Assembly: GCF_006345805.1 (NCBI RefSeq)
Contig: NW_021828070.1
Coordinates: 1-47,845, forward strand
Direction of reading: 5' to 3'
DNA: 47,845 nt
Source: Octopus sinensis
Lineage: Eukaryota
Shown piece by piece: positions 1 to 44,911 of the stretch. A program made the translations under genes and the position numbers. Each line of letters starts with the position of its first letter. Positions within the stretch are counted from its first letter, which is position 1. The notes beneath the pieces were generated by a model. It was not told the origin of the DNA, searched no databases, and saw only the letters and a program-made list of their open reading frames with translations.

Positions 1-886
1 GTGTGCAACCTGTAATCGATTGGTGTAAAACACCTCAGAGCTGAAAATACATATGCGTAGTCAGCAAATTGAATAAAATTCTTTGTGCATATTAAAACTG
101 TAAATAATGAAAACGAATTAATTATATTATAGATTTCCATCAGTTCATGGTTAAATTGTAAATAATGAAAGCAAATTAACTATATTGGAGGATTTTTATC
201 TGGTGATAGGGTGTATGTGTATGTGTGTGTGAATTGGACAGAGAATCAGACATTTCGCATACAGATATCAGAATTACCACAGTGCACCAACCACTTTACT
301 GTGAGAACTGGGTTGTTATTCGTGCCACCTAGTCTGTTGAGGTCACCATGCAGTTCAGAGGACTGGGAGAAGTGGGGGGGGGGAGAGTATTAGCGTCATG
401 CTAGGGAACAAGTAGATTGCTATAAGAGAGAGCAGACTCTTGAAGGAAGAAACTGCATTTAGTTGGAGAAAGAAAGAGTGGAGAGAAAAATAATCAGAAG
501 CAAGTGTGAGACATAGATAATGGTGATGCGGTGCCCAGATGGCACTACAAGCCCAAGCAGAAATGTTTGGGTGGGGGATATGCAAGATAGCTAGTCCTTT
601 GAAGATGGTTTGTGTGAGGGAATTACATATGCAACAGGTATCTACAATAACATATGACCTTGAAAACTAATCCCTGCCAAGTTAGGAAGGGGTCAGCAAA
701 AAAGGCCAGTGGAATAAGTTCACGGGTTTAAGGGTATTGTGAAAGGCATGGCTTGAAGCCCAATCTTCCAAGCTCTTTCACAAAGCTTAGAAAAACTGAA
801 TGACCGCTGCCATAAGTGGGTGAATCTGAAACGGGGGATATATTGAATAAAATCATAATTAACTGATCCATCTTCCTGTATTTCCT

Positions 887-1103
887 ATTTCTTTACTACC
901 CACAAGGGACTAAACACAGAGGGGACAAACAAGGACAGACAAACGGATTAAGTCGATTATATCTACCCCAGTGCGTAACTGGTACTTATTTAATCGACCC
1001 CGAAAGGATGAAACGTAAAGTCGACCTCGGCGGAATTCGAACGTAGCGACAGACGAAATACTGCTAAGCATTTCGCCCTGCGTGCTAACGTTTCTGCCAG
1101 CTC
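887..1103 (-). mobile_element. SINE family A1 (tRNA-like head GGCGAGCTGGCAGAAACGTTAGC, central CTTTCATCCTTTCGGGGTCGAT domain, tail ...CCCTTGTGGGTAGTAAAGAAAT)
   Basis: Same sequence recurs many times in the window. 14-bp target-site duplication TTCCTGTATTTCCT at 873-886 and 1104-1117. Confidence 0.92.
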
Positions 1104-1469
1104 TTCCTGTATTTCCTTTTACCCAAATCTAGGACTTTTTCAGCACCCCTTCGTACTATACGTCTGAGTATAAGCATACGGCATCTGTCAAACGAATTAT
1201 CAAAAGAAGGGCTGAATATAACTAGCGTGTTGCCGTTGCACTGCAATTCTTAAATGTGATGTGACTCAACTAGATAGTCATGTGACCTCATTATTTAACG
1301 TAACTTAGCTAATCCGTTGACTGGAGGATGTTGGTTACACAGGTGAACAGAGGTTCAAGTTCCAAAGGATCGTGAATGGTTATATAATTACGTTGATGAA
1401 TATTTTTCTGTGATATTTCAGTAGAGGATTTGAATTACTACTTGCCCAAGCACATACGCGCTGATACAT

Positions 1470-5852: not shown

Positions 5853-7091
5853 GTTCATATCATCCAACATCACATACCTTCTCCCATATACTTGCACGAC
5901 TAACTGATCCAAACCTATATAACCCACCCAACTTACCTGTCTCCAGAAACAACAGACTTAAAGTATGAATCCGATGTCTCAGTCCTTAACACAAATACTA
6001 CCAAAGAATGTAAAATATAACCACTTATTAAAATTCAACAACATAAAAACGAAACACACAAGCACAGAAAAAAATGGAATTTGAAACGTCCAAATACTTA
6101 AATAATAAACAATGTACCAACCAAACAATGTACCAGCATACGGTACTTAAAAATAACCTCAAATAAAATACTTAAATATATAAGGATAGCCGCTAGTGCT
6201 AGAGATAATTATTTTCGTCTGCCATAAAGACTGGCTACAATGATCAGAGGAGAATTTTCCTACGACTATTTGTGTTTCTGTGTTGGGCAAATGTGATCAG
6301 GAACAAGGAATGATGGAGATGATATTTGTTGAGTACATCATAAAAGTGTAGGCGAATCAAGAAGCAAAATTGGTGTTTTTTTTTATACCATATAAAAAAA
6401 ACAACATAAATACAACAGAAAGAAACATAACGTGTACACTGACAACATCAAGAAGCAATAATGGCATAAACACTACATTATGTCTATTAGTTCTATCATC
6501 ATTTTTAGCGAATGTAATAAATTTTGGACTCTAAGTGTGTAATAGACTTTGGTGTATTATAATTTAGGTGTTTTATAGTATAATGGTTATAATATTTAGG
6601 TGTTTTATATTATTTAGCTGTATTAGAGTATTACAGTCTTATGCTATAAAACCTAGGTGTATTTATAATTTTATCAGATCCTGTGTCTTTTCAGCTTTAC
6701 TAATTTTCTAAAGGTGTTCATTTGTCTGATGGCGAGAGGAAGATGCGAATATAAGGTCGAAATAAGATCTAGTATGTATCGAGCGTATCGTGTTTCGTCT
6801 TCCTGTTGCCCTTGTATTCGTGGACAGTCAACCGATTAGAAATAGCAACGAATTCCCCAAGATTTATTGTAAAAAATGTATAATGACTGCATCATATCTT
6901 GGATATGTATATATTAAAAAAATCCATTCAAGATGGACGTAGCTAGATTGCCTGTTAAATGATACAGATCTTCAGTTTACACTGTAGTGTCTTAAAAATG
7001 TGTTAACACATTCAATAAAACATTTCTGGATATGAATATAAAAGAAGAAAAGAGAGATGGTCATGGGTACAATTTGGTACATATAATTGAA

Positions 7092-7320
7092 GGCGTCGAG
7101 CTGGCAGAAACGTTAGCACGCCGGGCGAAATACGTAGCGGTTTTTCGTCTGCCGTTACGTTCTGAGTTCAAATTCCGCCGAGGTCGACTTTGCCTTTCAT
7201 CCTTTCGGAGTCGATAAATTAAGTACCAGTTACGCACTAGGGTCGATGTAATCGACTTAATCCATTTGTCTGTCCTTGCTTGTTCCCTATATGTTCAGCC
7301 CCTTGTGGGTAATAAAGAAA
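7092..7320 (+). mobile_element. SINE family A1
   Basis: Full head, body and tail. TSD ACATATAATTG at 7079-7089 and 7322-7332. Confidence 0.92.
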
Positions 7321-7859
7321 CACATATAATTGTTTAAGGATCAATTGATGGGGTAAGTGATCAACATGGTCAAGTATTGAGCAGTAGTAGGTTTTAGTAT
7401 ATCTTGGTAAGAATCACGAATTTAAGTGGAGGAAAAGAAAAAAAGGGTCTTACTGTTGTTTGCTTGGGGAATTGCCTTCCTATAACACCAGAGAAGTGGT
7501 TAGCAGTGGAGACTTATTGGAGTTTGCCGTACAGAATTGTCCCAGTGCTGTTCTTTTCAGCCTTTTTGGAACCTTGCATATGTTATACTTCTCACACACA
7601 CGCACGCACGAACGCACGAACGCATGTACGCACACACTCTCTCTCTCTTTCTCTCCTCCCTCTCTCCCAGACACGCGCTCTTACCTATGCTTTATATTAT
7701 TTTGTCGTTTAATTTTCCGTATGAGATTGACCTGAAATGTTTACCTTTGCCAGTGTATTGCGATGTTTTTTTTTTCTAATTTTTGTTTGCAATGCCATTG
7801 TTGTAAAGAGGCAAACATCTATCCCTCCTCTTCCTTCTCCTTATTCTCTACAATATCCA

Positions 7860-8699: not shown

Positions 8700-9550
8700 C
8701 AAAGCAGACAACAGCAGCAGCAGTAGCAGCAACAGCAGCAGCAGTAGCAGCAACAGCAGCAGCAGTAGCAGCAACAGCAGCAGCAGTAGCAGCAGCGACA
8801 ACAGCAGCATATACAGCAGCAACAACGGCAACTGCATAAATAACTTCCAGCAGCAGAAGCATCAGCAGCATCATCAGCATCATCATCAGCAGCGACAATA
8901 ACACCAAGAGCAAGAACGGAAGAACAAACAGCAGCTTCGAGAGCGTGATATCCACCAGCAGCAGCAGCAGCCGTTTCAGTAGCAGCAGCAGCAAAAACTA
9001 CAGTAATAAAATCAACAAGAAAAAGTCCCCCCCCCTCCCAGAAGAATAACAGTATCAACAAAGACAGCAGCAAACTGCAACAGCAACAACAGCAACAGCT
9101 GAAAGCGATAGTAACAACAACAGCGACATCTGCACAAAACTGCGGCCACAATAATGACAACACCAACCGCATCAAAGAGACTACCAACACTACCACCGCC
9201 GCCACCACCACCACCAAAACAGGCAAGGACAACACCAAGAACAAGAGCAACAACAACAACAACAACAGCAACGGCATCAATAGCAACAACAGCAACAACT
9301 GTGAAAAATGACAACAATAGCAAAAACAACTGTATCAGAGACAGAACCACAACCACCATAACAACATCACCACCACTACCACCACCTCCACAAGTAACAA
9401 CAGAAACAACAACAACAACAACAACAGCTACAACAACATCACCACCTCCACCTCCACAAATAACAACAACAACAACAACAACAGCAACAAAAACAACAAC
9501 AGCACCACCACCACAACTACCACCAGTAACAGAACAACCACATCAATAGC
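8700..9550 (+). repeat. (AGC)n/(AAC)n/(ACC)n compound trinucleotide tract, probably the low-complexity ORF1 N-terminus of copy A
   Basis: Visible repeats. Position after the 5' UTR matches the T/N/S-rich ORF1 N-terminus of copy B. Contains stops. Confidence 0.7.
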
Positions 9551-9642
9551 AGAAGCAAGAACAAAAATGACGGCGACGCCAAATTAAGTGATGGAGGACA
9601 ATCTACGAGTGAACAATCGCGTTGTGGTAACAAAATCAAACG

Positions 9643-9955
9643 GGCGAGCTGGCAGAACGTTAGCAAGCCGGACGAAATGCTTAGCAGTATTTCGTCTGCC
9701 GTTACGTTCTGAGTTCAAATTCCGCCGAGGTCAACTTTGCCTTTCATCCTTTCGGGGTCGATTAAATAAGTATCAATTACGCACTGTGGTCGATAGAATC
9801 GACTTAATCCGTTTGTCTATCCTTGTTTGTCCTCTCTGTGTTTAGCCCCTTGTGGGTAGTAAAGAAATAGGTATTTTGTCTGTCTACGATCTGGGTTCAA
9901 ATTCCGCCGATGTCGACTATGCCTTCCATCCTTTCGGGGTCGATAAATTAAGTAC
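9643..9955 (+). mobile_element. SINE A1 plus head-less second unit (9869-9955)
   Basis: Complete monomer to AAAGAAATAG (9868), then restarts at GTATTTTGTCT. Confidence 0.88.
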
Positions 9956-9956
9956 T

Positions 9957-10100
9957 AGTGCGTAACTGGTACTTATTTAATCGACCCCGAAAAGATGAAA
10001 AGCAAAGTCGACCTCGGCGGAATTTGAACTCAGAACGTAACGGCAGACGAAATACGGCTACACATTTCGCCCGGCGTGCTAACGATTCTGCCAGCTCGCC
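9957..10100 (-). mobile_element. SINE A, 3'-truncated, inverted relative to 9643-9955
   Basis: Reverse complement of head and body: ...TTCTGCCAGCTCGCC. Confidence 0.88.
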
Positions 10101-10548
10101 GTGGAACCATATCACTACGGCAAGGCAGTTTGGGAGAATGCAGGTCCCTTTAGGAGCGAAGCACTCGCATTGAAGCTCTCCTTAGCGCTTATACTAGACA
10201 AGGAGACCTGACTTATTTAGAGAGAAAGACCTGTCACGTCAAGATAGAGTTCTATCTGTATTGGATATCTGGTAGTTGTCATTTTAGAAGGTACAGACAC
10301 ATTCTTCGTTGTGAAACGACACTTAGAAGGGGTTTTAAGTGGGACCACAGTGAAGATCGTCAACCAGATCAAACCAGAGGAGGGGAAGAGATCCCAGACT
10401 TCATCCGCCTGCTCAGTGATGCGGAACTGCGTGTTGTAATTCATAGTACAAACGGCCACTTCAGAGATTTCTGTCTATAATATAGAGCGCAAAAGAGACG
10501 AGGTCCCAACTACTGCCGACATCATGGCCTTAACAGCAACTGCATACC

Positions 10549-10778
10549 TATTTCTTTATTACCCACAAGGGGCTAAACATAGAGGGGACAAACAAGGACA
10601 GACATAGGTATGAAGTCGATTATATCGACTCAGTGCGTAACTGTTACTTGATTTATCGAAACAGAAAGGATGAATGGCAAAGTCGACCTCGGCGGAATTT
10701 GAACTCAGAACGTAACGGCAGACGAAATACCGCTAAGCATTTCGCCCGGCGGGCTAACGTTTCTGCCAGCTCGTCGCC
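10549..10778 (-). mobile_element. SINE A1 inserted in ORF1 remnant of copy A
   Basis: ~22-bp TSD GCCTTA(A/G)C(A/G)GCAACTGCATACC at 10527-10548 and 10776-10797. Confidence 0.9.
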
Positions 10779-11167
10779 TTAGCGGCAACTGCATACCGTA
10801 GTACCAGTAGTAGCACCAGCACCAGCACCACCAGCACCGACATTACCACCATTACCATCACTGCTATTACCCCTACCATTACCATCATCACCACCACCTT
10901 TACCATCATTACCACAATTCCCACCGTTTCCACATCCATCACCATTACCACCACTACCGCCACCACTGTCACCACCACCAACAACAACAATGACATCAGC
11001 AACAGCAGCAACAAGAACAATAACAAACCCAGCAATAGTAGCAACAGCAACGATGACACTCACAAGAGCAGAACAAAATCCCGCCACTCAAGAAACTATC
11101 CGATCTAACTTACATTGCATTACACTCCCGTACCTTCAAGCAAAACACATGGACAAACACTTGCACA

Positions 11168-11365: not shown

Positions 11366-12209
11366 TTGTTTTCTAGACATGTCACATACATTCCTGCATC
11401 GAGTCTTTCCAATATGGAAACATCATCTTGCAAGGAGGTGGGTCATCTTGCGAGCAAATTCAAAACAAGGAGTAGACACCTGCACTAAACGAGGCACATA
11501 AACCACAACCACATCATCCATATCTACGATTCCTGCACGACTATCAGCACCTACCTCAACAGAAAGAAAACACATGCAAAGTATCAGCAGGTTGCCACAA
11601 AAAATGCCACATCAAGACACACCCACCCCAAAATTGTGCTGATAAAAAGCACAAAATTAAAGACTGATGTCTTCCTGTGGGGGAAATGGGTAACTTTGAA
11701 ATAGTAGAGTTATGGATTTGAATTTTTAAGATCATCCATCCCCGCCCCGCTTTCGGATTCTTTCTCAGCAGCATCACCACAATAAAGTTCAACAATAAAG
11801 TGCCAAAGAACTTCCGGAAAAAAGCCTAAAACTTCTGGAGACCCAATCACGCATTTTCCGGACAACCAAATAGGTAAGTAACTTGTCTTCTTTCTCTCTT
11901 TTTCCTCTTTCTGCCAATGTGAAGCTTCGAGAGTGGTTTGCATTAATGCAAGTAACCTGGTATCAATCTGTCACTTGATTAATGATCTTATGTCATTTGC
12001 CTGGATATGACAGCTATGAGCGAGACCAGAATTTCTGACACATGTGTTTGGGACCCATTTTTTGTGACCCTGAGATTTTCGTATCTCTTCCACGGATAGG
12101 GATGTGTAGAGTACGTTTTGGAAAGGTTTCATGCCCATGATATTCTGTATTTCCTGGATCGGAGTGTAAATCACTGGTTTTGGGCGTGAATAGTAACGAA
12201 GGGAATATC

Positions 12210-12432
12210 TATTTCTTTACTACCCATAAGGGGCTAAACATAGAGGGGACAAACAAGGACAGATAAACGGATTAAGTCGATTACATCGCCCCCAGTGCGT
12301 AACTGGTACTTAATTTATCGACCTCGAAAGGATGAAAGGCAAAGTCGACCTCGGCAGAATTTGAACTCACAACGTAAAGACATACGAAATACGGCTACGC
12401 ATTTCGCCCGGCGTGCTAACGTTTCTGCCAGC
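12210..12432 (-). mobile_element. SINE A1 interrupting APE remnant of copy A
   Basis: Family sequence. The APE peptide continues on both sides (..LGVNSNEGN / VAMYNA..). No clear TSD. Confidence 0.88.
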
Positions 12433-12799
12433 AACAGTCGCCATGTATAATGCGATGGGGGAAGGGATGCCTGAATGTTTTCAGGTGTTTGAAGATTTTA
12501 TTAGGAACATCCCGTTCTTTTCTACAACTGCTGTGAGAACGTCATCTGGAATTCACGTTGGCCACGTAAATCTTTTCAGTCGTTTCCAACAAGATGACAG
12601 ATATAAACTAGATCTACCGAATTGCACACAAGCAAACAGAACCAAGTTATTCAGATAATGTCTAGGTAGAGTACTCTGTAGAGCAGTAAATAGCTTAAGC
12701 AAAAGTTGTACAGTCCACATTTGTCGGCTACACAGACCACAAATTTTATCTCTACGATAAACCGCGCACCAAGTTTACAGACACCAGATTACAAAACAT

Positions 12800-14814: not shown

Positions 14815-15105
14815 GGCGCAGGAGGGGCTGTGTGGTAAGAAGCTTGCTTCCCAATCATATGTTTCTGTGTTCAGTCCCACTGCGTGGCACATTGGGCAAG
14901 TGTCTTCTACAACAGTCTCGGGCCGACGTGAGCCTTGTAAGTGGATTTGGTAGACGAAAACTGAAAGAAGCCCATCGTATACATACATATATGTATGTGT
15001 GTGTTTGTGTGTGTATATACGTATTTGCATGTTTGTGTTCGTCCCCTCCACACCAACCATCATCGTTTGACCACACATCATTTGGTGTGTTTACGTCCCT
15101 GTAGC
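14815..15105 (+). mobile_element. SINE family C (GGCGCAGGAGTGGCTGTGTGGTAAG head, CORE-like TTGGGCAAGTGTCTT, internal (TG)n)
   Basis: Homologous to 35405-35828 and 39228-39636. Confidence 0.85.
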
Positions 15106-15120
15106 ATAGATAGATAGATA

Positions 15121-15419
15121 TGTTTGTTCCTTCTCGAGCCATGCCTAACTCACAAGGGCCGGTTTCCCGGTTTCTTGGCGTATAGGTTCCCCACCTGAAT
15201 GGGACGCCGGTCCGTCGCAGGTGAGCAGCCAGATGCAGGAGGAAAGAGTAAGAGAAAGTGTGGGGCGAAGAGTCAGCAGTAGTTCGCATTACCTTCTGCC
15301 AGAGTCGCTGATCTTAGGTGTTTTCGCTCATAAACCACACATCGTCCGGTCTGAGATGTGAACCCGCGATCCCTCGACCGCGAGTCCGCTGCTCTAACCA
15401 CTAGGCCATGTGCCTCCAC
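15121..15419 (-). mobile_element. tRNA(Arg)-like-headed SINE family B, tail variant 1
   Basis: Head GTGGAGGCACATGGCCTAGTGGTTAGAGCAGCGGACTCGCGG shared with 40493-40873, 41088-41491 and 46847-47145. Confidence 0.85.

Positions 15420-15420
<1 letters not shown>

Positions 15421-15500
<80 letters not shown>
15421..15500. repeat. (GATA)20 at the 3' junction of Tx1-like copy B
   Basis: Perfect 80-bp tract. Confidence 0.98.
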
Positions 15501-15501
<1 letters not shown>

Positions 15502-15794
15502 CTTTTTATTGTAGCCACACAGGGCTAAACACAGAATAAAATGGACGAAATACAATGTAGAATTTTTTCTTTTCGAGGTGGGATGGGTGGGGCAAAAAAA
15601 AAAAAAAAAAAACCTTTGATCAATAGGGATCTGTGGGTTGTGTGGTGTATAAAAAAGCAATATATATATATATATAAAGGTTCACAGTTTAGGTGTAGCC
15701 TTGGAAAGAAAAACCTACAAAAAGACCAAGGTCACCTCAGACAGTTCGAAAAGAACACATGAGTAAGTCGCCTTACTTCTCGTTGTCTCTTTGG

Positions 15795-18700
15795 TTACAG
15801 ATTTATGCTTAAAATAGTGTCGTCTTTCATACTGACCATTTTTGCCACTTTTACCCACTTTTTATTAAAACATTCGTTCGACAAAGCCTTCCTCTCTATT
15901 CTCATCCTCCTTTTCAAGTGGTACTTGAAAAAGTTGACGAGAGACTGACCAGAGAGGAAGGTGTTTGTTTGCAGTCCTTTCAAACGCGTCCACCACACAC
16001 ATTCTTTCGCCATAGCCATCAGCGTAACGAAAACCGTTTTCCTTCCCGTTTAAAGGAAGGTGGTGGAACAATATTCACGATAGACTCGGCCGATAGGCGA
16101 GCCTGACCTACACGTGACAACAGCTGTTCGACGAAGGACCACAGCTCTGAAATATCTGGACACTGCACGAGTGCGTGCAGAACGGTTTCGTCGCTCTGAC
16201 CGCATCTCGGGCAGGTCGGTCCGGTGATGGTTTTCGAACCGTGTCTGTAGCTCTTCTCTCGAACAGGTAGTGCGTCTCGATAGCACTGCCAAGCCAGGGA
16301 TTTCTGGAAGTTATCCATAGGCCCCGGCCCGAACGTCGTCCTGAACAGGCGGGTTAGGAATTCCTCGTCGACGCCCAGGTTTGCCCCGAGTGTGTCGTCG
16401 GACCTCCCCTCCACTAGTCCTCTATAGAACGCTTTAGTCGTTTGGAAGTTGCACAAGTTTGACCCCGTCGGCAGAGCTGCTGTAGAGCTTGGCGACACTC
16501 TCGGTGCCAATCGCCCAGTTTCGGTCTCTTTTTGATCCACGTTTGCAGTTCGGTCAGTGAGACGAGCTGCGGGAAGTCGCGCCTCACAAACGGCGCCCAC
16601 ACCTGTTCACCGTCGTCGATGAATTTCCAGAGATGTCGCAGTCTCAGCGCATGCCTGCGCATCATCAACCACGGCATGCCCAGTCCTCCATTCAACGGAT
16701 GTTGACAGCAAATGGACTTCCTCACCATCGGAACGCCACCCTTCCACAGGAAGCGGAAGAGTATGCGTTCCAGTTTGGTGATGGTGGCGTCGGGACAAGG
16801 TACGACGGTCAGGCGGTAATCGATGACGGATGCGATGTACGCGTTCGCCACCTCCGCCCGGCCTTTTAGAGACAGCTTTCTCTCGGCCCATGTTTGGCTG
16901 AGAGCGACCACTCTACTCGTGATCTCGTCCCAGTTCTTATCCATTTGGAGGTCCGGACTGAACCAGACCCCGAGCAATTTAACCGGTCCGTCCGTCCAGC
17001 GTCCCACTACTGAGCCGCAGTCGGACGGCATGGGCTTGCTTCTCCAGGTGCCGAGTAGCAAACCCACTGACTTTTCCGGGTTAATCTTTGCTCCCGTCAC
17101 CGTTTCATATTTTCTTAGTGTCTCGCCGACCATTCGATGTGCTGGTAGCTCGACACTATGACGGTGACATCGTCCGCATATGCCGACACGCTCGTCCCGC
17201 AACCCAGTTCCCGTGGGATGCCCCTCAGTGTCGCCAGCTTCCGCAGTAGCGGCTCGAGAGTCAATACATACAGAAGCGCCGACAGGGGACACCCCTGACG
17301 GACCGAACGCGTGATGTCAAACGGTTTCGACAGGTGACCGTTCACCCGAATCACCGATCGGATGCCGCTATACAAGGCAGCGATCCAACCGCGGAAGACG
17401 GGACCGAAGCCAGCCGCCCTGAGGACGGCCGCCAAGTACCGATGGTCGACCCTATCGAAGGCTTTAGACTGATCCAAATTTATCAGCGCCCCACCCATGC
17501 CAGGATCCTTAACTACCCTGTCCACAATGTAGCGCATCAGATGGAGGTTGTCATGTATGGTTCTGCCCGGCACGGCGCATGTTTGCGCCCTGTCGACCAG
17601 TTTACCAATGACAAGCGCCAACCTCTCGGCTATTACTTTGGCCAAAATTTTCAAATCTGCGTTGAGCAGAGTGATGGGCCTGAAATTATCTATAAAATTC
17701 CCCTTGTTTGAGTCTTTCTTCAGCAACGTCACTGCACCTCGGCTCACGAAACCGGGGATTCTCCCGTTTTGTTGCCAGTTGCAGTAGACTGATGCCAAGA
17801 GGTCGCCAAACAAGTCTGGCATTCGACAATACAGCTCGTAGGGTAAACCATCCAATCCAGGCGACTTATCCCTCGCGCAGCCCGCCATCGCATCCCACGT
17901 CAGCGGCTGTGATGGGACTTTCACAACACTCCGCCTCTCTTGCCGAGAGCCGCGGCAGGTCGGTCAGGTAGGCACTGAAATCCATCCCTCGTTCCGACCC
18001 ACCACTCGCACCAAACAGTCGAGCAAAGTGCTGTTGAAAGGCCTCACACATCCTTTCGGGTTCGAGTAAACTGCATCCCTGTTGATCTATTAGAGACCGA
18101 ATGGTTGATCTGTTGCCACGCTGCGCCTCCGCTACCCGGGCCTCTCGCGCAGCTTCAATCCCTTCGTTCCTTAAGGCACGCATTTTAGCTCTGACGACGC
18201 AACCTTCGTGCTTGGCGTTGAGGTGTTGGTCGAGGGCCATCCTCGCAGCTAGCACGTTGGTTGCGCTGCCAGTGGTAAGTGCCTCTTCTAGTTTCTTAAC
18301 TAAGTCTCCCTCTACTCTATTTCGTTCTATCGCTAATTCCTTGCTAAACCTAATTGATTCCGATTTTATTGCCATTTTCAGGGCGTACCACCAGCGGTTG
18401 TTAACGACCGCTCCCGTCAGCGCCCTCTTAATTAACTCGCTAATCCGGTTCCTGTAAACCTGTCGCGCTAACAGCGACGTGTTCAGTTTCCAGTAACCGG
18501 GACCCTGCCTATGTGTTTTATCTAAGTCGAGCGTACACGTAACAAATTTGTGATCTGTGTAGCTGACTATTTTAAATTGTGGACATCCTACACTATCCCT
18601 ATCCGCTGTCCTGCATAGAATTCTATCTAGATAAGATCTCGACGATCCGACGCGGTTTGTCCAAGTCCACGTTGGCACGTTCGGATGGTCGAGTCGGAAC

Positions 18701-19239
18701 CTGTCAGACAAATGGAAACGTCTGAGCAGGTCTTTGAGGCTCTTACACCCCCTTCTATTCCTATCCCTTCCCACATAATCTAGATGCGTGTCCAAGGTAG
18801 CGTTCCAATCCCCTACTAACAGTAAAGGTCTAGACGTACCCAGGAAAACCTCTAGACGTCTGAAGAAATCCGCCCGACCCGTTAAGGACGGTGCATAAAC
18901 TGCCATCAGACGGAATGCACACCCATTTCTGCCATCCACGTCCAAGACAACCAGCCTACCCTCCGGGTCTAGGAATATTGCTCTTACTTTTACCTTTAGA
19001 CTCTTTCGAAAAAGCACCGCAGTACCTCCACCACCCATGTTCGGCAGACAGGGAGAAAAATAAATGTCAAATTGATTGCCAAACATGGACTCGAGGGCCC
19101 GCGGCTTACTGAGTCTGGTTTCACTGATAGCTACTATATCCACGTCCAGTGACTTGATGTCGTTTAGAAGGTAACCTTGCTTCCAAGCCGACGCCAAGCC
19201 ACGCGCATTCACACAACCTAATTTAAGCATACTTGACAT
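15795..19239 (-). CDS. ORF2 polyprotein (APE endonuclease, reverse transcriptase, C-terminal Cys/His finger), ~1149 aa after restoring 5 missing bases at 4 frameshifts
   Basis: APE motifs: NARG, SETRL, VYAP, GDWN, YLDRI, TDH. RT motifs: SPGLDG, NFRPITLLNADLKILAK, DQSKAFD, RQGCPLS, YADD. Finger: CPRC..ETVLHALVQC. Frameshifts near 17895, 17132, 16467 and 16036; no in-frame stops. Confidence 0.93.
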
Positions 19240-19440
19240 TTACGAAAATTGTGTTTTACACACTATATTAGAAGAGACAAGAGGCAAGAAGTGAGGTCAC
19301 TTACTCATTTTAAAAGTTTCATTTTTTCTTCTTCTTTTGTATCGTTTTGATGAGGTGTTTGTATAGTTTTTTCGACAGGTATCGTTGATACCCGCCTACC
19401 GCATTCGGAATAATGTTTTCAGTATGTGGTGTTGCTTGTG

Positions 19441-21118
19441 TTATGTGTAAAATTCTGATGTGTTTCGGTGGTGTGGTGTGCGGATGATTGTTTGTCTTAA
19501 ATCATCTTCACAGACGACCATGTTAGATTTGATGTAGTCCATTAATTCTTTATTGTCTGTGTCTATTGCAGTTAGTTGTGTGTGTGGTTTTACGGGTTCA
19601 TTACTTTTTTGATTGTCTAGGGGAATGTTGTCCTGAGTGAGATATCTCCCTGCTTTAATTCCTTGTTTGGTGGATTTTTTGGATCTTTTTTTTTTACCCC
19701 CTGTGGCTATTTGCCATTCCGTCGAACTTTCGTCGTCCGACGGTATCAGTATGGGGTAGAGGAAAAGAACAGGATCACTATGTATGCTTGTATAAATTGT
19801 TGATGTTTTGTGCGGTGTTTGTGTTGTTGTGGTGTTAGGGGTAGCATTTGTCTTCTCGTCAGTGTTTTCTGTCTTTTTAATTGTCGTCCTGGGTGTGGGT
19901 GTGGGTCGATTTTTTGAAGATTCAACAAGTTTAATTGGTTGTGACGTCAACGGTGATTGTGTTGGTACTGTTTTTCTTGGTGATGTTGTTGGTTTGGTTG
20001 TTTTTCTTGGCGTTGTTCCATAATTGAGTGTGTTGGTGTTGGTGTTGGCAACAAAGGGATTTTATTTGTTTTCTGAATTGTTCTTTCTTGTTTTTTCTGT
20101 ACCAGATCGCACTTGGCAATCAAATGTTCGGGGCTGCCACATTTGTAGCATCTAGGCTTTTTGCCTTCTGCCATAACATATAGGCATTGCCCATTCTCCA
20201 AGTATATCTTGTCGGGTAGGCTCTCGATAGAGGCCCCCTCAATCTGGATGGTCAACACTACTGTTTTTCCACCCCAATTGTCGTTTAGGTACACGGCTGT
20301 TTCTAGAATATTGATCTTTTTCAAGTGGTAACAGATTGCCCCTGTTATCCATTTGTTCGGCATATCGGGGGGTACATTTCTGATAGTAATTCTACTCACC
20401 CTCTGGTTTTTATAATAAGGGACCATGATGATTTCATCATTTCCCAGAGACTCAGTAGAGTGAGCTTTTGCCACTTCCTGGTTAGGGAAGCGGACCACTA
20501 CTGTGTTAAACTGGGGACCCCAGTTTATATACTCTTTTTCTTTCATTATGTTTTTTAAACATTTCTCCACATCAGTTTTTGTAATCTGTTCATTTGGTTT
20601 TTTGTTTTTTCTAATAATTTTATATACAATTGTCTTATTTTCTATTTCTTGTTTTATATGTTGAGGTGTATGCAGGACTAAATCTTGTCCACGGGTTGTA
20701 AAGAGAGCTCTTGTTTCTATGAGCTCTTCATTTGTGAATGTAACAATCTCCTTTTTCTGGCGAAGAATATCTGCGAAATTTACTGTTGTTGACTTTTTTG
20801 TATTGGCATCTTCACTATTAGATAGTTCATTTTTATTGTTGTTCTTGTTGTTGCTGTTGTTTTTGTCAATAGTTTTCGTTTCAGTTTTATTTTTATCATT
20901 TATGTTGGTCGTGGTAGTGGTGGTGGTGGTGGTGGAGGTGGTGGTGGTAGCAGTTGTTGTCTCGTGGTTGCTGTTGTTAGTGGTGGTGGTGGCGGTGGTG
21001 ACAGGGCTGTTAACGCACGTGGTTGCAGCGTTCCTTTCACCGAATTTCACGTTGGCATTTTCCGTGCGAACGTTCTTTTTTTCTCTGTCGTTTCCAGACT
21101 AGGAAAATTTTGTTCCAT
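19441..21118 (-). CDS. ORF1 gag-like protein (T/N-rich N-terminus, RRM-like middle, CCHC knuckle, T/P/K-rich C-terminus), ~559 aa after two 1-bp restorations
   Basis: CYKCGSPEHLIAKC knuckle. Probable ATG at 21118 (MEQNFPSL). Frameshifts in the A-run at 21076-21082 and near 20031. The RRM-like label is inference. Confidence 0.85.
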
Positions 21119-21361
21119 AAAAGAACGCGACCAGCGTTCAACAATAAAAGAAATTTCTAGACATTTTCTAATGTCGAGAAGAATACAGAAATGAAATGGG
21201 GGGTCGAAACTGCCCCTAGGGGCGAATTCCTCCCTTGGAAAAGCACTCAAATGAAAGTTGGTTGCCTTCACACCTTATTTGCAAAAATCTACACAAAATT
21301 GGCCTATAAATAGTCAAAATAAATGATTACCTTCGGAGCTGAAACGACATCACATCCGTCA

Positions 21362-21386
21362 ATAGATAGATAGATAGATAGAATAG

Positions 21387-21468
<82 letters not shown>

Positions 21469-21484
21469 GATAGATAGATAGATA
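21362..21484. repeat. Imperfect (GATA)n between copies B and C
   Basis: About 30 units with a few interruptions. Confidence 0.97.
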
Positions 21485-23633
21485 CTTTCTTTTATAGCCA
21501 CACAGGGCTGAATACAGAGGGGACAAATACAAATGCAGAGCTTTTCTTTTCGAGGGTGGAAAAAAATAAAAATGTAAGATTGCGATCAAAAGGGATCGAG
21601 AGGAGGAAAAAAGGAAAAAAAGAAAATCGTGTATCACAGAAATAATGGTGTAAACATTGATATAACAAGATTGGGTTCATCCGTGGAAGAAAAGCCTACA
21701 GAAAAGACCACGGGAACCCCAGTCAGGGAGGAAATAACACATGAGGTCAAAAATGCTCTCTTTCTTTCTTTTTACGATTTACAGGATCATGCTCAAAATG
21801 GTTTCGTTACTAGCACGCACCATCTTTGCAACATTCACCCATCTTTTTTTGAATCTTTCGCGAGACAAAACTTCCCTCTCCATTCTCACCTTCCTTTTCA
21901 AGTGGTACTTGAAAAAGTTGATGAGCGATTGGCCAGAGAGGTAAGTGTTTGTCTCTAATCCTTTCGCTCGAGTCCACCACACACATTCTTTCACCATGGC
22001 CACCAGTACGATGAAAACTGCCTTGCCTTCCGGTTGAGGGAAGGGGGCGGAGCAATTCTCACGATAGACTCGGCCGATAGGCGGATTCGTCCCACACGTG
22101 ACAGCAGCCGTACGGCATAAGCCACAGGTCGGAAATGGTTGGGCATTGCACGAGTGCGTGCAGAACGGTTTCGTCGCTCTGACCGCATCTCGGGCAAGTC
22201 GGTCCAGTGTGTCTGGAACCGTGTCTGTAGAGCTTATCCCGAACAGGTAATGCTTCTCGATAGCACTGCCAGGCCAGGATCTTTGGTGATTGTTCATAGG
22301 TCCCGGCCCGAAAGTTGTCCTGAACAGGCGGGTCAGTGTTCCTCGTCGACGCCCAGACTCTGCCCGAGTTCGTCGTCGCACCTCCCCTCACTAATCCTCT
22401 ATAGAATGCCTTTGTTGTGATGGAGTCGCACAAGTTCGATCCCGGACGGCAGAGTTGCTTGAGAGCAACGCGACACTCGCGGTGCCATTCGCCTAGCTCG
22501 GTCTCTGCTTGATCCATGACTGTAGTTCGTCCAAGGAGACGAGCTGCGGGAAAGCGCGCCGCACAAAAGGCGACCACCCCTGTTCACCGTTGTCTATGAA
22601 GCGCCGGAGATGTCGCAGTCTCAGCGCATGTCTGCGCATCATCAACCACGGCATGCCCAGCCCTCCATTTAGCGGGTGTTGGCAGCAAATGGATCGTCTA
22701 ACCATCGGAACGTTTCCCTTCCACAAGAAGCGGAAGAGTATGCGTTCCAGTTTGGTGATGGTAGGGTCGGGACAAGGCACGACGGTCAGACGATACTCGA
22801 TGACGGATACGATGTGTACGCGTTCGCCACCTCCGCCCGACCTTTTAGGGATAGCTTTCTCTCAGTCCATTTCTGGTGAGAGTAGCCACCCTAGTCGTTA
22901 TCTCGCCCCAGTTCTTCTCCATTTGGAGGTCCGGACCGAACCAGACCCCGAGCAATTTAACCGGTCCGTCCGTCCAGCGTCCCACGATGGAGACGCTGTT
23001 GGACGGCATGGGCTTGCTTCTCCAGGTGCCGAGCCGCAAGCCCACTGACTTTTCCCGGTTAATTTTTGCTCCCGTTACCGCTTCGTATTCTTTCAGTGTC
23101 TCGCCGACCAGCTCGATGTGCTCGTAGCTCGACACTATGACGGTGACGTCATCCGCGTATGCAGACACGCTCCTCCCGCATCCCAGCTCTCGTGGGATGC
23201 CCCTCAGCGTCGCCAGTTTCCGCAGTAGTAGTGACTCAAGAGTCAGTACATACAGCAGCGATGAGAGGGGGCATCCCTGACGAACCGAACGCATGATGTT
23301 AAAAGGTCTGGATAGATGACCATTTACGCGAACTACTGAGCGGATGCCGCTGTATAAGGCAGCGATCCAACCGCGGAAAACTGGACCGAAACAGCCGCTT
23401 TGAGGACAGCCTCCAAGTAGTGATGGTCTACCCTATCGAAGGCTTTTGATTGATCCCAATTGATCAGCGCCCCACCCATGCCAGGATTTTTAACTACCCT
23501 GTCTATGATGTAGCGCATCAGATGGAGGTTGTCATGAATACTTCTACCCGGCACGGCGCATGTTTGCGCCTTGTCGATTAGTTTCTTGATGACAAGCGCC
23601 AACCTCTCGGCTAACACCTTGGCCAAAATTTTC

Positions 23634-23636
<3 letters not shown>
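21485..23636 (-). mobile_element. 5'-truncated Tx1-like copy C (RT to 3' end), frameshifted
   Basis: Begins at LKILAK directly after (TATC)n. Contains DQSKAFD, RQGCPLS, YADD and CPRC finger. Same 3' terminus as copy B. Confidence 0.93.

Positions 23637-23724
<88 letters not shown>
23637..23724. repeat. (GATA)22 at the 5' truncation junction of copy C
   Basis: Perfect tract abutting RT-coding sequence. Confidence 0.98.
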
Positions 23725-26510: not shown

Positions 26511-26813
26511 ATAAATAGCTCATGGCTACAATCCAATACTAATTACTGGAATCAAACCAATGATACCTATTTTTCTAAGTCTGGCCTGTACTCTATCGAT
26601 ATCCTTTTGGAGAACTGCTCAGTTACGGGACGTACAGATTGCAACATGTTTGTCAAGCGGTAATGGGACCCAAACGCAAAGACATATGAGCGCATTCACA
26701 TAGCAGACCTCGTTTATTTACAGTTTACGAAATCCACCCACAAGGCTTTAGTTTGCCCGGGGCCATATTTGCCAAGACATGCCCGAGATTCCGCACAACG
26801 GTACTGAACCTTA

Positions 26814-27223
26814 GAGCTGGCAGAAACGTTAGCACTCCGGTCGAAATGCTTTGCGGTATTTCGTCTGCCGTTACGTTCTTAGTTCAAATTCCACCGAGCT
26901 CGACTTTGCCTTTCATCCTTTCAGGGTCGATTAAATAAGTACCAGTTACACACTGGGGTCGATATAATCGACTTAATCCGTTTGTCTGTCCTTGTTTGTC
27001 CTCTCTGTGTTTAGCCCCTTGTGGGTAGTAAAGAAATAGGTATTTCGTCTATCTTTACGTTCTGAGTTCAAATTCCGCCGAGCTCGACTTTGCCTTTCAT
27101 CCTTTCGGGGTCGATTAAATAAGTACCAGTTACGCACTGGGGCCGATATAATCGACTTAATCCGTTTGTCTATCCTTGTTTGTCCTCTCTGTGTTTAGCC
27201 CCTTGTGGGTAGTAAAGAAATAT
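26814..27223 (+). mobile_element. Dimeric SINE A1 (full unit plus head-less unit), inserted into a decayed family C fragment
   Basis: A single 15-bp TSD GTACTGAACCTTAGA (26801-26815, 27224-27238) brackets both units. Confidence 0.9.
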
Positions 27224-32070: not shown

Positions 32071-32103
<33 letters not shown>

Positions 32104-32209
32104 GTGTATGTATGTATGCATGTATGTATGTGTGCATGTATTCATTCATGTGTATGTATGTATGTATGTATGTATGTATGTATGTATATATGTATGTATG
32201 TATGTATGT

Positions 32210-32539
32210 ATGGCTCAGTGGTTGGAGCTTCGGGTTGACAACCATGAGGTAGTGAGTTCGATTTCCGAACGTGGCTATGTGTTGTATTCTTGAGCAAGGC
32301 GCTTTATTTCACATTGCTCAAGTTCGCTCAGTTGAAGAAATGAGTTGTGACGTCACTAGTGCCAAACTGTGTCGGCCTATGCCTTTCCCTTGGATAACTT
32401 CAGTGGCATGGAGAGTGGAGGATGGTATGCATGGGCGACTACTGGTCTTCTATAATAATCTTGCCCGGACTTGTGCCTCGGAGGGTAACATTCTGGGTAC
32501 AATCTCATGGCGAGTCATGCCCGAAAGAGGTCTTTACCC
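32210..32539 (+). mobile_element. CORE-type SINE family D (duplicated at 33423-33750)
   Basis: ATGGCTCAGTGGTT head, TTCTTGAGCAAGGCGCTTTATTTCAC core. Homologous to 44356-44911. Confidence 0.8.
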
Positions 32540-32572
32540 ACCTGTGTTTTCAATATTTATATATATTTATAA

Positions 32573-32799
32573 GCGGTGAGCTGGCAGAAACGTTAGCACG
32601 CCAGGCGAAATGCGTAGTCGTATTTCGTCTGCCGTTACGTTCTGAGGTCGACTTTGCCTTTCATCCTTTCGGGGTCGATAAATTAAGTACCAGTTACGCC
32701 CTGGGGTCGATATAATTGGTATTTCATTTCTCTTTATGTTCTGAGTTGAAATTCCGCCGAGGTTGACTTTGCCTTGTGCCTAGAGTAGAAAAGAATATT
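32573..32799 (+). mobile_element. SINE A with partial second unit and A2 tail (duplicated at 33784-34009)
   Basis: GAGCTGGCAGAAACGTTAGC head; ends CCTTGTGCCTAGAGTAGAAAAGAAT. Confidence 0.82.
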
Positions 32800-34221
32800 T
32801 GTATTCTCTTCTTTGTTTGCCGAGGTTCAATTCACACTCCAGATCTTAATATTTTCTTCTCCAAATCAAACTTTTGATTTTTACCCCCAAAAAAACGCTC
32901 TCTTTCATCATGCAGTCACATTTTTCATTAACAAAAAACAAAAACAACACGTCTGAAAAAGCTATAGTGAAATTTAAAACAGTTATGTTCTGTCTGTATG
33001 TATGTGTGTGTTTTATGTGTGTATATATATATATATATATATTTGTATACTCGAGAGAAAACCTGCGGCACTGAGAGTATTCGATGATGTAGACTAGTTC
33101 TTCTTCTTAAGTTTACGCTGTCCATGTTCAGAGAGTGGGAATGGATTCGTGCAACCCTTTCCCACAAATAAAAAAAATCATCATACACAAGCAGAAAGTA
33201 GATGATTACAAAATGGCTGGTCGTAGCCTTCGCATGCATGAAAATTCGATCAGGCGATGGCAATACGCGAACACGAGTTTGTAGCATCACACACACACAC
33301 ACACACACATTATATATGTGTATGTATGTATGCATGTATGTATGTGTGCATGTATTCATTCATGTGTATGTATGTATGTATGTATGTATGTATGTATGTA
33401 TATATGTTGTATGTATGTATGTATGGCTCAGTGGTTGGAGCTTCGGGTTGACAACCATGAGGTAGTGAGTTCGATTTCCGAACGTGGCTATGTGTTGTAT
33501 CTTGAGCAAGGCGCTTTATTTCACATTGCTCAAGTTCGCTCAGTTGAAGAAATGAGTTGTGACGTCACTAGTGCCAAACTGTGTCGGCCTATGCCTTTCC
33601 CTTGGATAACTTCAGTGGCATGAGAGTGGAGGATGGTATGCATGGGCGACTACTGGTCTTCTATAATAATCTTGCCCGGACTTGTGCCTCGGAGGGTAAC
33701 ATTCTGGGTACAATCTCATGGCGAGTCATGCCCGAAAGAGGTCTTTACCCACCTGTGTTTTCAATATTTATATATATTTATAAGCGGTGAGCTGGCAGAA
33801 ACGTTAGCCACGCCAGGCGAAATGCGTAGTCGTATTTCGTCTGCCGTTACGTTCTGAGGTCGAACTTTGCCTTTCATCCTTTCGGGGTCGATAAAATAAG
33901 TACCAGTTACGCCCTGGGGTCGATATAATTGGTATTCATTTCTCTTTATGTTCTGAGTTGAATTCGCCGAGGTTGACTTTGCCTTGTGCCTAGAGTAGAA
34001 AAGAATATTTGTATTCTCTTCTTTGTTTGCGAGGTTCAATTCACACTCCAGATCTTAATATTTTCTTCTCCAAATCAAACTTTTGATTTTTACCCCCAAA
34101 AAAACGCTCTCTTTCATCATGCAGTCACATTTTTCATTAACAAAAAACAAAAACAACACGTCTGAAAAAGCTATAGTGAAATTTAAAACAGTTATGTTCT
34201 GTCTGTATGTATGTGTGTGTT

Positions 34222-34252
<31 letters not shown>

Positions 34253-34446
34253 TGATAATATGATATAACGCAGGAATTATCGATATGTTAATATTCAATT
34301 AATATTCCATCAATATGCTAATATTCAATTAACTTTTGAAATCTAGAAACACCTGTTACTTTTACATTTTGAAAAAGAAAAAAGATCAAAATAAATGTAA
34401 ACATGGTTGTGAGGTAAGGAGCTTGCTTCACAACAAAAGGCATTGA

Positions 34447-34659
34447 GGCGGCGAGCTGGCAGAATCGTTCGCACGCCAGGCAACATGTTTAGCAGCATCT
34501 CGTCTGTCTTTATGTTCTGAGTTCAAATTCCGCCATGGTCGACTTTGCTTTTCATCTTTTCGGAGTAGTTAAATTAAGTACCAGTGAAACTCTTTGGTTG
34601 ACGAGATCGACTAATCTCTTCCGACCAAAATTTCAGGTCTTGTGCCGATAATAGAAAGG

Positions 34660-34660
<1 letters not shown>
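34447..34660 (+). mobile_element. SINE A2 subfamily followed by (TTA)n
   Basis: A-type head and body; tail TTTCAGGTCTTGTGCCGATAATAGAAAGGA. Confidence 0.82.
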
Positions 34661-39080
<4,420 letters not shown>

Positions 39081-39120
<40 letters not shown>

Positions 39121-39125
39121 TATAA

Positions 39126-39207
<82 letters not shown>
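39081..39207. repeat. (TAT)n at the 3' junction of copy D
   Basis: Directly visible. Confidence 0.96.
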
Positions 39208-43481: not shown

Positions 43482-43996
43482 GGTTAGATGAATGTATGTT
43501 ATTAAGACATTGTCTTTGCTGCTAGATGTTCTTCCTGTTGCTAACCATAAATTATTTTTCAGATAAGGGGGGTGGGGTTTCTTTCTACTCATCTTCGAAA
43601 GTACAATGCTACAAGATGATTTGTTGACTGACAAATATCCACAAATATCACCATCTGTAGTTCAGCAATTTTTTTTTTTTTACTGCACTTATTCTAAACA
43701 TTCACATACACACAGTTATGTGATGCATGCAGTCATACACTTAGATGATGCTTTGTACAATTTCCATATAATATAGAAAGGGTAATGATTGGGTGTATTG
43801 AGTACAGGATAGTGTGGGGTGAGTGAATACATGTAGTTACTGTGCCATCCCTCTTTTTACAGGTGGCATGGACCAGTTACATTTTACAGATGACATGGAG
43901 GGTGGGTGATTTTCAGAGAAACAGGAGGATCAAGCATGTCTGATGGCATACCTACACAGACAGCATGGTACAATGAATAGGGGAGATTGAATAGGT

Positions 43997-44223
43997 GGCG
44001 AGCTGGCAGAAACATTAGCACGCCAGGCGAAATGCGTAGCCGTATTTCGTCTGCCGTTACGTTCTGAGTTCAAGTTCCGCCGAGGTCGACTTTGCCTTTC
44101 ATACTTTCGGGGTTGATAAATTAAGTACCAGTTACACACTGGGGTCGATGTAATCGACTTAATCCCTTTTTCTGTCCTTGTTCGTCCCCTCTATGTTTAG
44201 CCCCTTGTGGGTAATAAAGAAAC
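43997..44223 (+). mobile_element. SINE A1 in CCZ1 intron
   Basis: 16-bp TSD GAATAGGGGAGATTGA at 43975-43990 and 44225-44240. Confidence 0.93.
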
Positions 44224-44355
44224 AGAATAGGGGAGATTGAGTGTTATCTAATATAATGAACAAAATATAATGAACTGGAGAGATGAGTTTAAATGTGTTA
44301 AAATGGCTAAACTATCAGAAACAGGATTTACTGCCAGAATTATTTCTCAGTAGAA

Positions 44356-44911
44356 GGCGCATGGTTAGAGTGTTGGGCTCACAATCATGAGGTAGCACGT
44401 TCAGTTCCCAGACAGTGTTGTATGTTGTGTTCTTGAGCAAGGCACTTTATTTCACGTTGCTCCTGCTCACTCAGCTGTAGAAATGAGTTGTGATGTCACT
44501 GATGCCAAGCTCATCGGTCTTTGCTTTTTCCTTGGATAACATTGGTGGTGTGGAAGGTGGTAAGCTGGCAGAAACGTTAGCATGCCAGGTGAAATGCATA
44601 GCAGTATTTCATCTGTCTTTTATGTTCTGCGTTCAAATTCCGCCAAAGTCGACTTTGCCTTTCACCCTTTTGGGGTTGATAAATTAAGTACCATTTGCAT
44701 ACTGGGGTCGATGTAATTGACTGCCTCCCTCCCCAAAAATTTCAGGCCTTGTGCCTTGAGTAGAAAAGAATATTGGTGGTTTGGAGAGGGGAGATTGGCA
44801 TGCATGGGAGACTGGTCTTTCATAAACAACCTTGCCCAGACTTGTGCCTCAGAGAGGAACTTTCTAGGTGCAATCCCATGATCATTGATGACCAAAGAGG
44901 GTCTTAACCCT
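44356..44911 (+). mobile_element. SINE family D with nested SINE A2 (44557-44772)
   Basis: D sequence resumes after the insert. TSD TTGGTGGT(G/T)TGGA at 44542-44554 and 44773-44785. Confidence 0.85.

Follow-up and report, generated by a model that had tools for sequence, protein, structure and literature searches.

In mammals, the open reading frame 2 (ORF2) protein of the long interspersed element (LINE) L1 moves an RNA polymerase III (pol III) short interspersed element (SINE), Alu, in trans, with relaxed recognition of poly(A). Tails shared between a SINE and a LINE are also established, as exemplified by UnaSINE1 and UnaL2 of the eel (Kajikawa & Okada, 2002; Ohshima et al., 1996; as cited in PMC4494074, PMC4824008, and PMC3472496), and the LINE-derived tail classes in SINEBase are Bov-B, CR1, and L2 (PMC3531059). 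Stringent pairs of the L1 clade were described for the maize/sorghum LINE1-1_ZM lineage with its SINEs and for L1-1_CR and SINEX-3_CR of Chlamydomonas (Ohshima, 2012, PMC3472496). Here, we analyzed 47,845 nucleotides of Octopus sinensis DNA (contig NW_021828070.1, positions 1 to 47,845, forward strand; assembly GCF_006345805.1), herein referred to as the window, in which the commonest SINE (type 1) and a Tx1-like LINE of the L1 superfamily probably form such a pair. The last ~45–55 nt of this SINE and the 3' terminus of an octopod L1-superfamily, Tx1-like LINE clade are homologous; that this clade copies the SINE is given a probability of about 75%.

Tx1-group elements, Kibi and Koshi among them, are characterized by insertion into specific microsatellites (PMC4494074). 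According to Kojima & Fujiwara (2004), as cited in PMC4494074, the targets are (TC)n for Kibi, (TTC)n for Koshi, and (TTCC)n/(TTTC)n for the crocodilian families. For the crocodilian SINEU, Tx1-Mar was proposed as the driver on the grounds of the common target Mariner-N4_AMi and of common 5' heads (Kojima, 2015, PMC4494074). In published octopus annotations, L1-Tx1 is the sole L1-type LINE group, and 13 recently active L1-Tx1 families were found in Octopus vulgaris (PMC13282606; PMC8967140). SINEs make up ~11.6% of the O. vulgaris genome, and nearly all of its recently active SINE families are "unclassified" (PMC13282606). The literature searched, with Repbase entries outside that search, names no LINE partner of octopus SINEs and contains no description of GATA-specific Tx1 elements; no paper on (GATA)n and (ATT)n as Tx1 targets was found in it.

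The octopus case is a new example of the well-known SINE/LINE partnership. As in UnaSINE1/UnaL2, the 3' tail of the SINE is homologous to a LINE end from the same genome, contains a conserved stem-loop, has no poly(A), and is accompanied by target-site duplications (TSDs). Unlike in the eel, the putative partner is L1-superfamily and Tx1-like, not L2, CR1, or RTE, the elements lack a short 3' tandem repeat of their own, and the pairing is drawn from sequence alone. The plant and algal pairs resemble the octopus pair in that an L1-clade LINE and a SINE share a structured 3' end with varying stem and conserved loop; those pairs have poly(A) ends, whereas the octopus elements represent an animal Tx1-like lineage ending in AAAGAAAT, with no A-tail and with a microsatellite-specific LINE. 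In common with SINEU/Tx1-Mar, a Tx1-group LINE is proposed as the SINE driver. Here, however, the argument runs via the 3' tail, and the microsatellite target of the LINE is not used by the type 1 SINE, none of whose seven copies in the window has a GATA or ATT array as insertion site. Like Kibi and Koshi, the LINE is an apurinic/apyrimidinic endonuclease (APE)-type L1/Tx1-like element located inside a microsatellite, with the repeat on both sides; it differs from them and from the crocodilian families by its targets, (GATA)n and (ATT)n, and by its cephalopod hosts. The octopus pair resembles L1 and Alu in that an L1-superfamily ORF2 protein would act in trans on a pol III SINE, with TSDs of comparable length, but the octopus LINE and SINE have in common a specific tail other than poly(A).

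The LINE side of the shared tail is carried by the following features (UTR, untranslated region; RT, reverse transcriptase):

21485–23636, minus strand: LINE copy C, 5'-truncated, with a frameshifted RT, a C-terminal zinc-finger region, and a 294-nt 3' UTR
21486–21526, minus strand: 41-nt terminal segment common to copy C and the SINE tail (gapless, 34/41)
21496–21509, minus strand: copy C tail hairpin AGCC[CTGTGT]GGCT, homologous to the CTTGT-loop hairpin
15501–21361, minus strand: LINE copy B, near full length, with ORF1 and ORF2, defective, with GATA arrays on both sides
15513–15526, minus strand: copy B tail hairpin AGCC[CTGTGT]GGCT (LINE end at 15501)

The original prediction, made by reading the letters of the window, had aligned the terminus of copy C with the SINE tail at 34 of 41 positions without gaps. 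The string was found exactly at 21486–21526 (minus strand), and the count was reproduced; against the consensus of seven copies, the match of the same 41-mer is 33/41. The SINE consensus used in the prediction had been made by eye and proved realistic, since seven SINE copies differ from it by 1–3 mismatches and the eighth copy matches it at 37/41. Local alignment of copy C with the SINE gives 34/42 and stops 1 nt short of the LINE terminus. The predicted common end point of the two elements is correct to within 1–3 nt: the LINE ends in ...AAAGAAAG followed by TATC and the SINE in ...AAAGAAATA(G) followed by the TSD, both at a common AAAGAAA. The terminal base of copy C is 21485, and (TATC)n begins at 21484. 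Copy B carries CTGTGTTTAGCCC exactly (15522–15534, minus strand), as had been predicted. Three parts make up the shared tail: a motif resembling CTGTGTT, a hairpin of 4 bp whose CUUGU loop is invariant, and a terminus rich in A (AAUAAAGAAAU).

In total, ~95,600 41-mers on both strands of the window were scanned for the tail. The best non-SINE matches were the two LINE termini, with 34 matching positions for copy C and 27 for copy B, and the background maximum was 23–24. For the estimation of significance, the 3'-terminal 60 nt of the SINE were aligned locally to the LINE 3' UTRs, with 2000 dinucleotide-preserving shuffles for each. The score of the copy C 3' UTR was 44, compared with 16.9 ± 2.5 for shuffled sequences (maximum 31; 0/2000; z = 10.6), and that of the copy B 3' UTR was 28 (0/2000; z = 5.1). 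A comparison with shuffled 3' UTRs had been named beforehand as one that could refute the relationship; no shuffle reached the score of copy C. The combination of the hairpin and the A-rich end was found at no other site in the window. In a metagenome scan, the LINE-type tail 14-mer TTGTGGCTAATAAA gave chance matches only, none with the hairpin or the A-rich context.

The type 1 SINE is ~238 bp long and is represented in the window by seven full copies as well as by partial and dimeric units:

884–1116, minus strand: SINE type 1, tail 41-mer 888–928, TSD GGAAATACAGGAAGA
7086–7322, plus strand: SINE type 1, tail 7280–7320, TSD ACATATAATTG
9634–9871, plus strand: SINE type 1, tail 9827–9867, followed by a partial second unit (9870–9959) and an inverted partial unit (9957–10097)
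10547–10784, minus strand: SINE type 1, tail 10551–10591, TSD GGTATGCAGTTGC
12209–12444, minus strand: SINE type 1, tail 12212–12252, TSD looked for and none found
26799–27222, plus strand: dimeric SINE type 1, tails 26996–27036 and 27180–27220, TSD GTACTGAACCTTAGA
43988–44225, plus strand: SINE type 1, tail 44182–44222, TSD (G)AATAGGGGAGATTGA

These copies are 92–94% identical to their own consensus and end in ...GTAAAGAAATA(G), without a poly(A) tail. An A-box-like motif (TGGCAGAAACG) is located at consensus position 16 and a B-box-like motif (GTTCAAATTCC) at position 80. Clean TSDs of 11–16 bp flank five copies (884, 7086, 10547, 26799, and 43988), none of which lies in a GATA array, in agreement with the TSD-flanked insertions outside GATA reported in the prediction. 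The first base or bases of the TSDs, G or GG, coincide with the G(G) at the element's end, and no CTAT- or ATT-like motif is present at these junctions.

Dimeric SINEs were found at two independent loci (9634–9959 and 26799–27222), each consisting of a full unit and a second unit that starts from SINE position ~45. Because both loci have the same junction, AAATAG followed by GTATTTCG, a dimeric subfamily is suggested rather than two chance tandem insertions. The partial units at 9870–9959 (plus strand) and 9957–10097 (minus strand) meet head-on at 9957–9959, forming a palindrome directly after the full copy.

A second SINE family, type 2, was found at 32578–32800, 33789–34010, 34453–34660, and 44550–44772. 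Two of these copies are described as follows:

44550–44772, plus strand: SINE type 2, head and body related to type 1, tail TTTCAGGC[CTTGT]GCCTTGAGTAGAAAAGAAT, TSD ATTGGTGGT
34453–34660, plus strand: SINE type 2, tail adjoining the (ATT)n array at 34660–34896

The type 2 tail (TTTCAGGCCTTGTGCCTWGAGTAGAAAAGAAT) differs from that of type 1; the CTTGT loop is kept, and the stem is flipped to AGGC/GCCT. The 3' junctions of type 2 SINEs start with ATT in three independent copies.

Further LINE 3' ends were taken from contigs that encode relatives of the LINE C-terminal region. Contigs L001, L002, and L128 stop before the LINE terminus and so give no tail, and L134 is likewise uninformative. The LINE L004 from Argonauta hians, which ends in (TTA)n, matches the Octopus SINE tail at 44/54, with a score of 54 that is above the 44 of copy C; its terminal sequence is AAAGAAATAA. 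The tail motif is also present in L006 (a metagenome-derived, apparently octopod contig ending in (ATT)n), in the Logan contig set L129–132, and in the Argonauta sequences L005a and L005b. A cuttlefish LINE, L133 from Acanthosepion pharaonis, retains the tail hairpin with the CTTGT loop. Since the tail recurs in Argonauta, in octopod-like contigs, and in a cuttlefish, it is a property of the whole LINE clade and not of a single copy. Two arrangements in these contigs may be mentioned: L004 contains a tandem array of a short SINE (1041–1356), and L007 holds two LINE copies in tandem with a period of 7547 bp.

Across 30 kb of Argonauta DNA, the SINEs number at least 12 and have two or more head types; all of them end in ...TTCTGTGTTCGGCCCTTGTGGCTAATAGAGAAAT. 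The tail of these SINEs matches L005b, a 5'-truncated Argonauta LINE 3' UTR, at 50/59 positions, which points to the partnership independently in a second octopod genus and with the same LINE clade. L005b, a LINE fragment with a SINE-type tail, lies clearly outside any microsatellite. L005a was also considered as a non-microsatellite insertion and was ruled out by its degenerate TTA-rich 3' flank. Of 12 independent 3' junctions in Argonauta (L005b and 11 SINE copies), 10 are followed by CTAT, which is one (CTAT)n unit of a GATA-type repeat. These CTAT junctions and the ATT junctions of type 2 SINEs hint at a residual target signature. The TSDs of A. hians (L004, L005) begin with (C)TAT or TTAT.

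In the tails, a 4-bp stem closes a CTTGT loop; the exceptions are CTGTGT (6 nt) in copies B and C and AGGT in L005a. All eight SINE tails have the 5-nt CTTGT loop, as do the non-GATA siblings L004, L005b, L006, and L129. The LINE stems are AGCC/GGCT, GGCC/GGCT, GGCC/GGCC, and AACC/GGTT, and the Octopus SINE stem is GCCC/GGGT. Stems CGGC/GCCA and TGGC/GCCG were found in two more distant LINEs, L007 and L133. Covariation was analyzed in a gapless alignment (A2) of ten hand-picked tails, all with a 5-nt loop. The MAFFT alignment of all tails (A1) mis-registers copies B and C, with their 6-nt loops, and L007, with its shorter stem, and was left out of the pair counts. In A2, 90% of stem cells are paired, compared with 73.5% after shuffling (0/500) and at most 55% in slid controls. 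The covariation score is 0.533, compared with 0.246 after shuffling (0/500), and both sides change in three of the four pairs. The same helix was obtained from RNAalifold and, for 8 of 11 tails, from single-sequence folding. For the Argonauta tails, the predictions add a longer outer helix (UUCU...AGAA); it is absent in the Octopus SINE fold and is not claimed here. In the LINE tails of the decapodiform type (L133, ~9050–9100; L007, ~6890–6950), a second hairpin lies after the one with the CTTGT loop and covaries as well (TTGTATT/AATACAA vs. TTGTAC/GTACAA).

The remaining LINE-associated features of the window are as follows:

21362–21484, strand not assigned: (GATA)n/(TATC)n array that separates copy C from copy B and belongs to the target microsatellite, from Tandem Repeats Finder and sequence
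23636–23724, strand not assigned: (GATA)n array 5' of copy C, adjoining unique DNA, from a tandem-repeat search
15420–15500, strand not assigned: (GATA)n array 3' of copy B, from a tandem-repeat search
34897–39080, plus strand: sibling LINE copy A, ORF2 start at 36574, internal deletions, 5' limit inferred

Read along the element strand, unique DNA is followed by (TATC)n, copy C, (TATC)n, copy B, and a last (TATC)n array. Because (TATC)n flanks both copies throughout, B and C lie within one GATA microsatellite; they are 82% identical across 1983 nt. The ORF2 of copy B has Pfam matches to Exo_endo_phos (AP endonuclease, 2e-17), RVT_1 (4e-26), and the L1-type zf-RVT (1e-6), and its ORF1 has a possible CCHC knuckle with a weak Pfam match below threshold. 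This ORF2 is broken across at least four reading frames, so copy B is dead. Among solved structures, the best match of the RT is human L1 ORF2p (3e-38, vs. 3e-20 for R2). The AP endonuclease, the RT, which is nearest to L1, and the C-terminal Cys/His motif place the LINE in the L1 superfamily. The "Tx1-like" label is reasonable, if provisional, and comes from the domains, the target specificity, and the published octopus annotation. The names attached to relatives, namely the 120 best word-index matches and 10 clusters from an exhaustive search, are generic and give no pointer to the Tx1 group. The target specificity, in a small sample, is (GATA)n for B and C, (ATT)n for A, and (TTA)n or (ATT)n at the ends of L004 and L006. 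An internal hairpin in the 3' UTR of the GATA LINE family (21681–21714, minus strand, in C; 15699–15731, minus strand, in B) has a compensatory change, its arms being CCGTGG...CCACGG in C, ACCGTGG...CCACGGTT in L001, and CCTTGG...CCAAGG in B.

Copy A is located between (ATT)n at 34660–34896 and (TAT)n at 39081–39207. It is 63–70% identical to copy B by blastn and, by tblastn, 38% in the APE and 25% in ORF1; its tail has diverged and has no clear hairpin. The layout at 34453–39207 is a type 2 SINE, (ATT)n, LINE A, and (TAT)n, where the SINE tail ends in ...AATAGAAAGG followed by ATTATT. The array occupied by LINE A may have grown from the SINE end or been seeded beside it.

In the proposed mechanism, the SINE RNA would offer its tail to the LINE ORF2 protein, with "stringent" recognition of the hairpin-bearing tail, and the protein would copy the RNA by target-primed reverse transcription at a nicked target. 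The products would be tail-less SINE copies flanked by 11–16-bp TSDs. The GATA-embedded LINEs of the window would be defective relatives of the driver and not the exact driver. SINE dispersal could be due to a sibling LINE that is not confined to microsatellites; alternatively, microsatellite targeting could need features of the LINE transcript that the SINE is without. The exact partner would be expected to be a Tx1-like subfamily with GCCC[CTTGT]GGGT and ...GTAAAGAAATAG and with an age like that of the SINE (about 6–8% divergence). That the SINE is mobilized by the Tx1-like clade, as originally proposed, is supported at the clade level by a tail that is terminal, significant, and clade-wide; from this tail we infer that the RT recognizes it, that trans-mobilization occurs, and which subfamily is the partner. 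For the insertions outside GATA, the prediction had offered either targeting relaxed in trans or a non-specific sibling LINE. The sibling alternative has gained from the CTTGT loop and the better tail fit, and the relaxed one is less favored. Thus, since copies B and C are defective and have a 6-nt loop, the siblings match the SINE better, and L005b lies outside any microsatellite, a sibling subfamily with the 5-nt CTTGT loop is more likely to be the true partner.

A hexamer resembling a polyadenylation signal is present inside the shared tail (21488–21497, minus strand, in copy C; all SINE tails), 4–8 nt from the element end. Copy C has TATAAA, the sibling LINE tails have AATAAA, and the SINE copies have either AATAAA or AGTAAA. 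With AATAAA so close to the end of the tail, LINE transcripts may run on into the flanking repeat; that such run-on contributes to targeting is speculation. We tentatively consider one broader possibility, in which the 3' CUUGU hairpin, kept from octopods to cuttlefish, is the template-recognition element of the coleoid Tx1-like clade and targeting operates largely via the LINE transcript instead of the endonuclease alone. For example, RNA that reads past the internal AAUAAA into the repeat could pair with the microsatellite at the nick. SINEs having taken over the hairpin tail alone would then have escaped this targeting and spread genome-wide.

Several other explanations of the shared tail can be weighed against copying of the SINE by the Tx1-like clade through a sibling subfamily. 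It is unlikely that the GATA-specific lineage of copies B and C itself moved the SINE, with its targeting relaxed when a pol III transcript is copied in trans. No closer match than copy C (34/42) was found in the same genome, and an older GATA master could have had a closer tail, given SINE copies 92–94% identical to their consensus; however, B and C share the CTGTGT loop and the AGCC/GGCT stem, whereas the loop is CTTGT in 8/8 SINE tails, and the score of L004 exceeds that of copy C (54 vs. 44). A partner from another clade, such as RTE, CR1, L2, or Dong-R4, all abundant in octopus, would make the Tx1-like resemblance secondary. SINEs with tails usually pair with such clades, which are active in O. 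vulgaris (PMC13282606), but nothing else in the window comes near the tail, the tail with its hairpin is kept in Tx1-like LINEs from octopods to cuttlefish, and the Argonauta SINE matches Tx1-like LINE tails at 50/59. Such a partner is therefore highly improbable.

The chance is slimmer still that the LINEs gained the tail secondarily from a nested or captured SINE fragment, in which case the similarity would be uninformative on recognition. Capture could be imagined in a region as dense in SINEs as this one, with about 13 copies in 48 kb. In B and C, which are 82% identical, the tail nevertheless stands at the exact terminus beside the target microsatellite, no SINE body or head is attached to it, the preceding 3' UTR is LINE-specific, and the tail is also found in LINEs of Argonauta, of other contigs, and of the cuttlefish. 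Finally, a chance likeness of two short, T-rich, low-complexity ends has already been refuted: the segment is just 41 nt long, but 0/2000 shuffles reach the score, the two best non-SINE matches in the window are the two LINE termini, and the match recurs in independent genomes.

The following points speak against the partnership with the Tx1-like clade. The window contains no intact LINE and no partner with the exact tail, copy B being frameshifted at least four times and copy C truncated, and the LINE tails that match best belong to another genus or lie on contigs of uncertain origin. Between copy C and the SINE, 7 of the 41 tail positions differ, and these include the loop length and one stem pair. 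The type 1 SINEs lie outside GATA/ATT arrays, unlike all three LINE copies of the window. The Tx1 placement is provisional, and the tail comparison, with respect to RTE, CR1, and Dong-R4 LINEs, covered the window and not the genome. Pol III transcription is backed solely by the A- and B-box-like motifs; on the type 1 SINE head, ARAGORN found no tRNA and Rfam no RNA family. The hairpin is tiny, with folding energies that fall short of significance (z, –0.1 to –2.6), and its covariation rests on ten hand-picked sequences of equal loop length. Because the helix is too small for significant energies and the set was chosen by hand, the evidence that the tail hairpin is a conserved RNA element is good but not conclusive.

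The window as a whole is AT-rich eukaryotic DNA, dense in microsatellites and short repeats. The closest relatives of the proteins encoded by its long minus-strand ORFs were found in Argonauta hians and Octopus bimaculoides, which indicates an octopod genome. Outside the LINE regions, ORFs of at least 70 aa resemble, by appearance, low-complexity sequence or SINE read-through; Pfam covered the LINE ORFs only. At ~32100–34300, the window holds a segmental duplication arranged in tandem (period, about 1.21 kb), where 32560–32960 is almost the same as 33770–34170; it takes in (TGTA)n arrays and a composite SINE. Further tRNA-like SINE heads, not related to the main SINE, were found at 14820–14950 (plus strand) and 15380–15420 (minus strand), for example GGCCTAGTGGTTAGAGC and the B-box GTTCAGTCCCACTG; one of them gave a 13-mer match with two mismatches at 14865.

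These results name the probable engine of the octopus SINE expansion. One Tx1-like LINE clade is tied to the commonest SINE of the window, to a second SINE family of the window, and to several SINE families of Argonauta. The pair would be an animal case of stringent 3'-end recognition within the L1 superfamily, for which the published cases found come from plants and algae, and the tail offers a small testable RNA element with a 4-bp stem and a CUUGU loop. The question raised is by what route dispersed SINEs come from a microsatellite-restricted LINE lineage. If targeting is indeed borne largely by the LINE transcript, escape from it would account for the octopus-specific SINE explosion.

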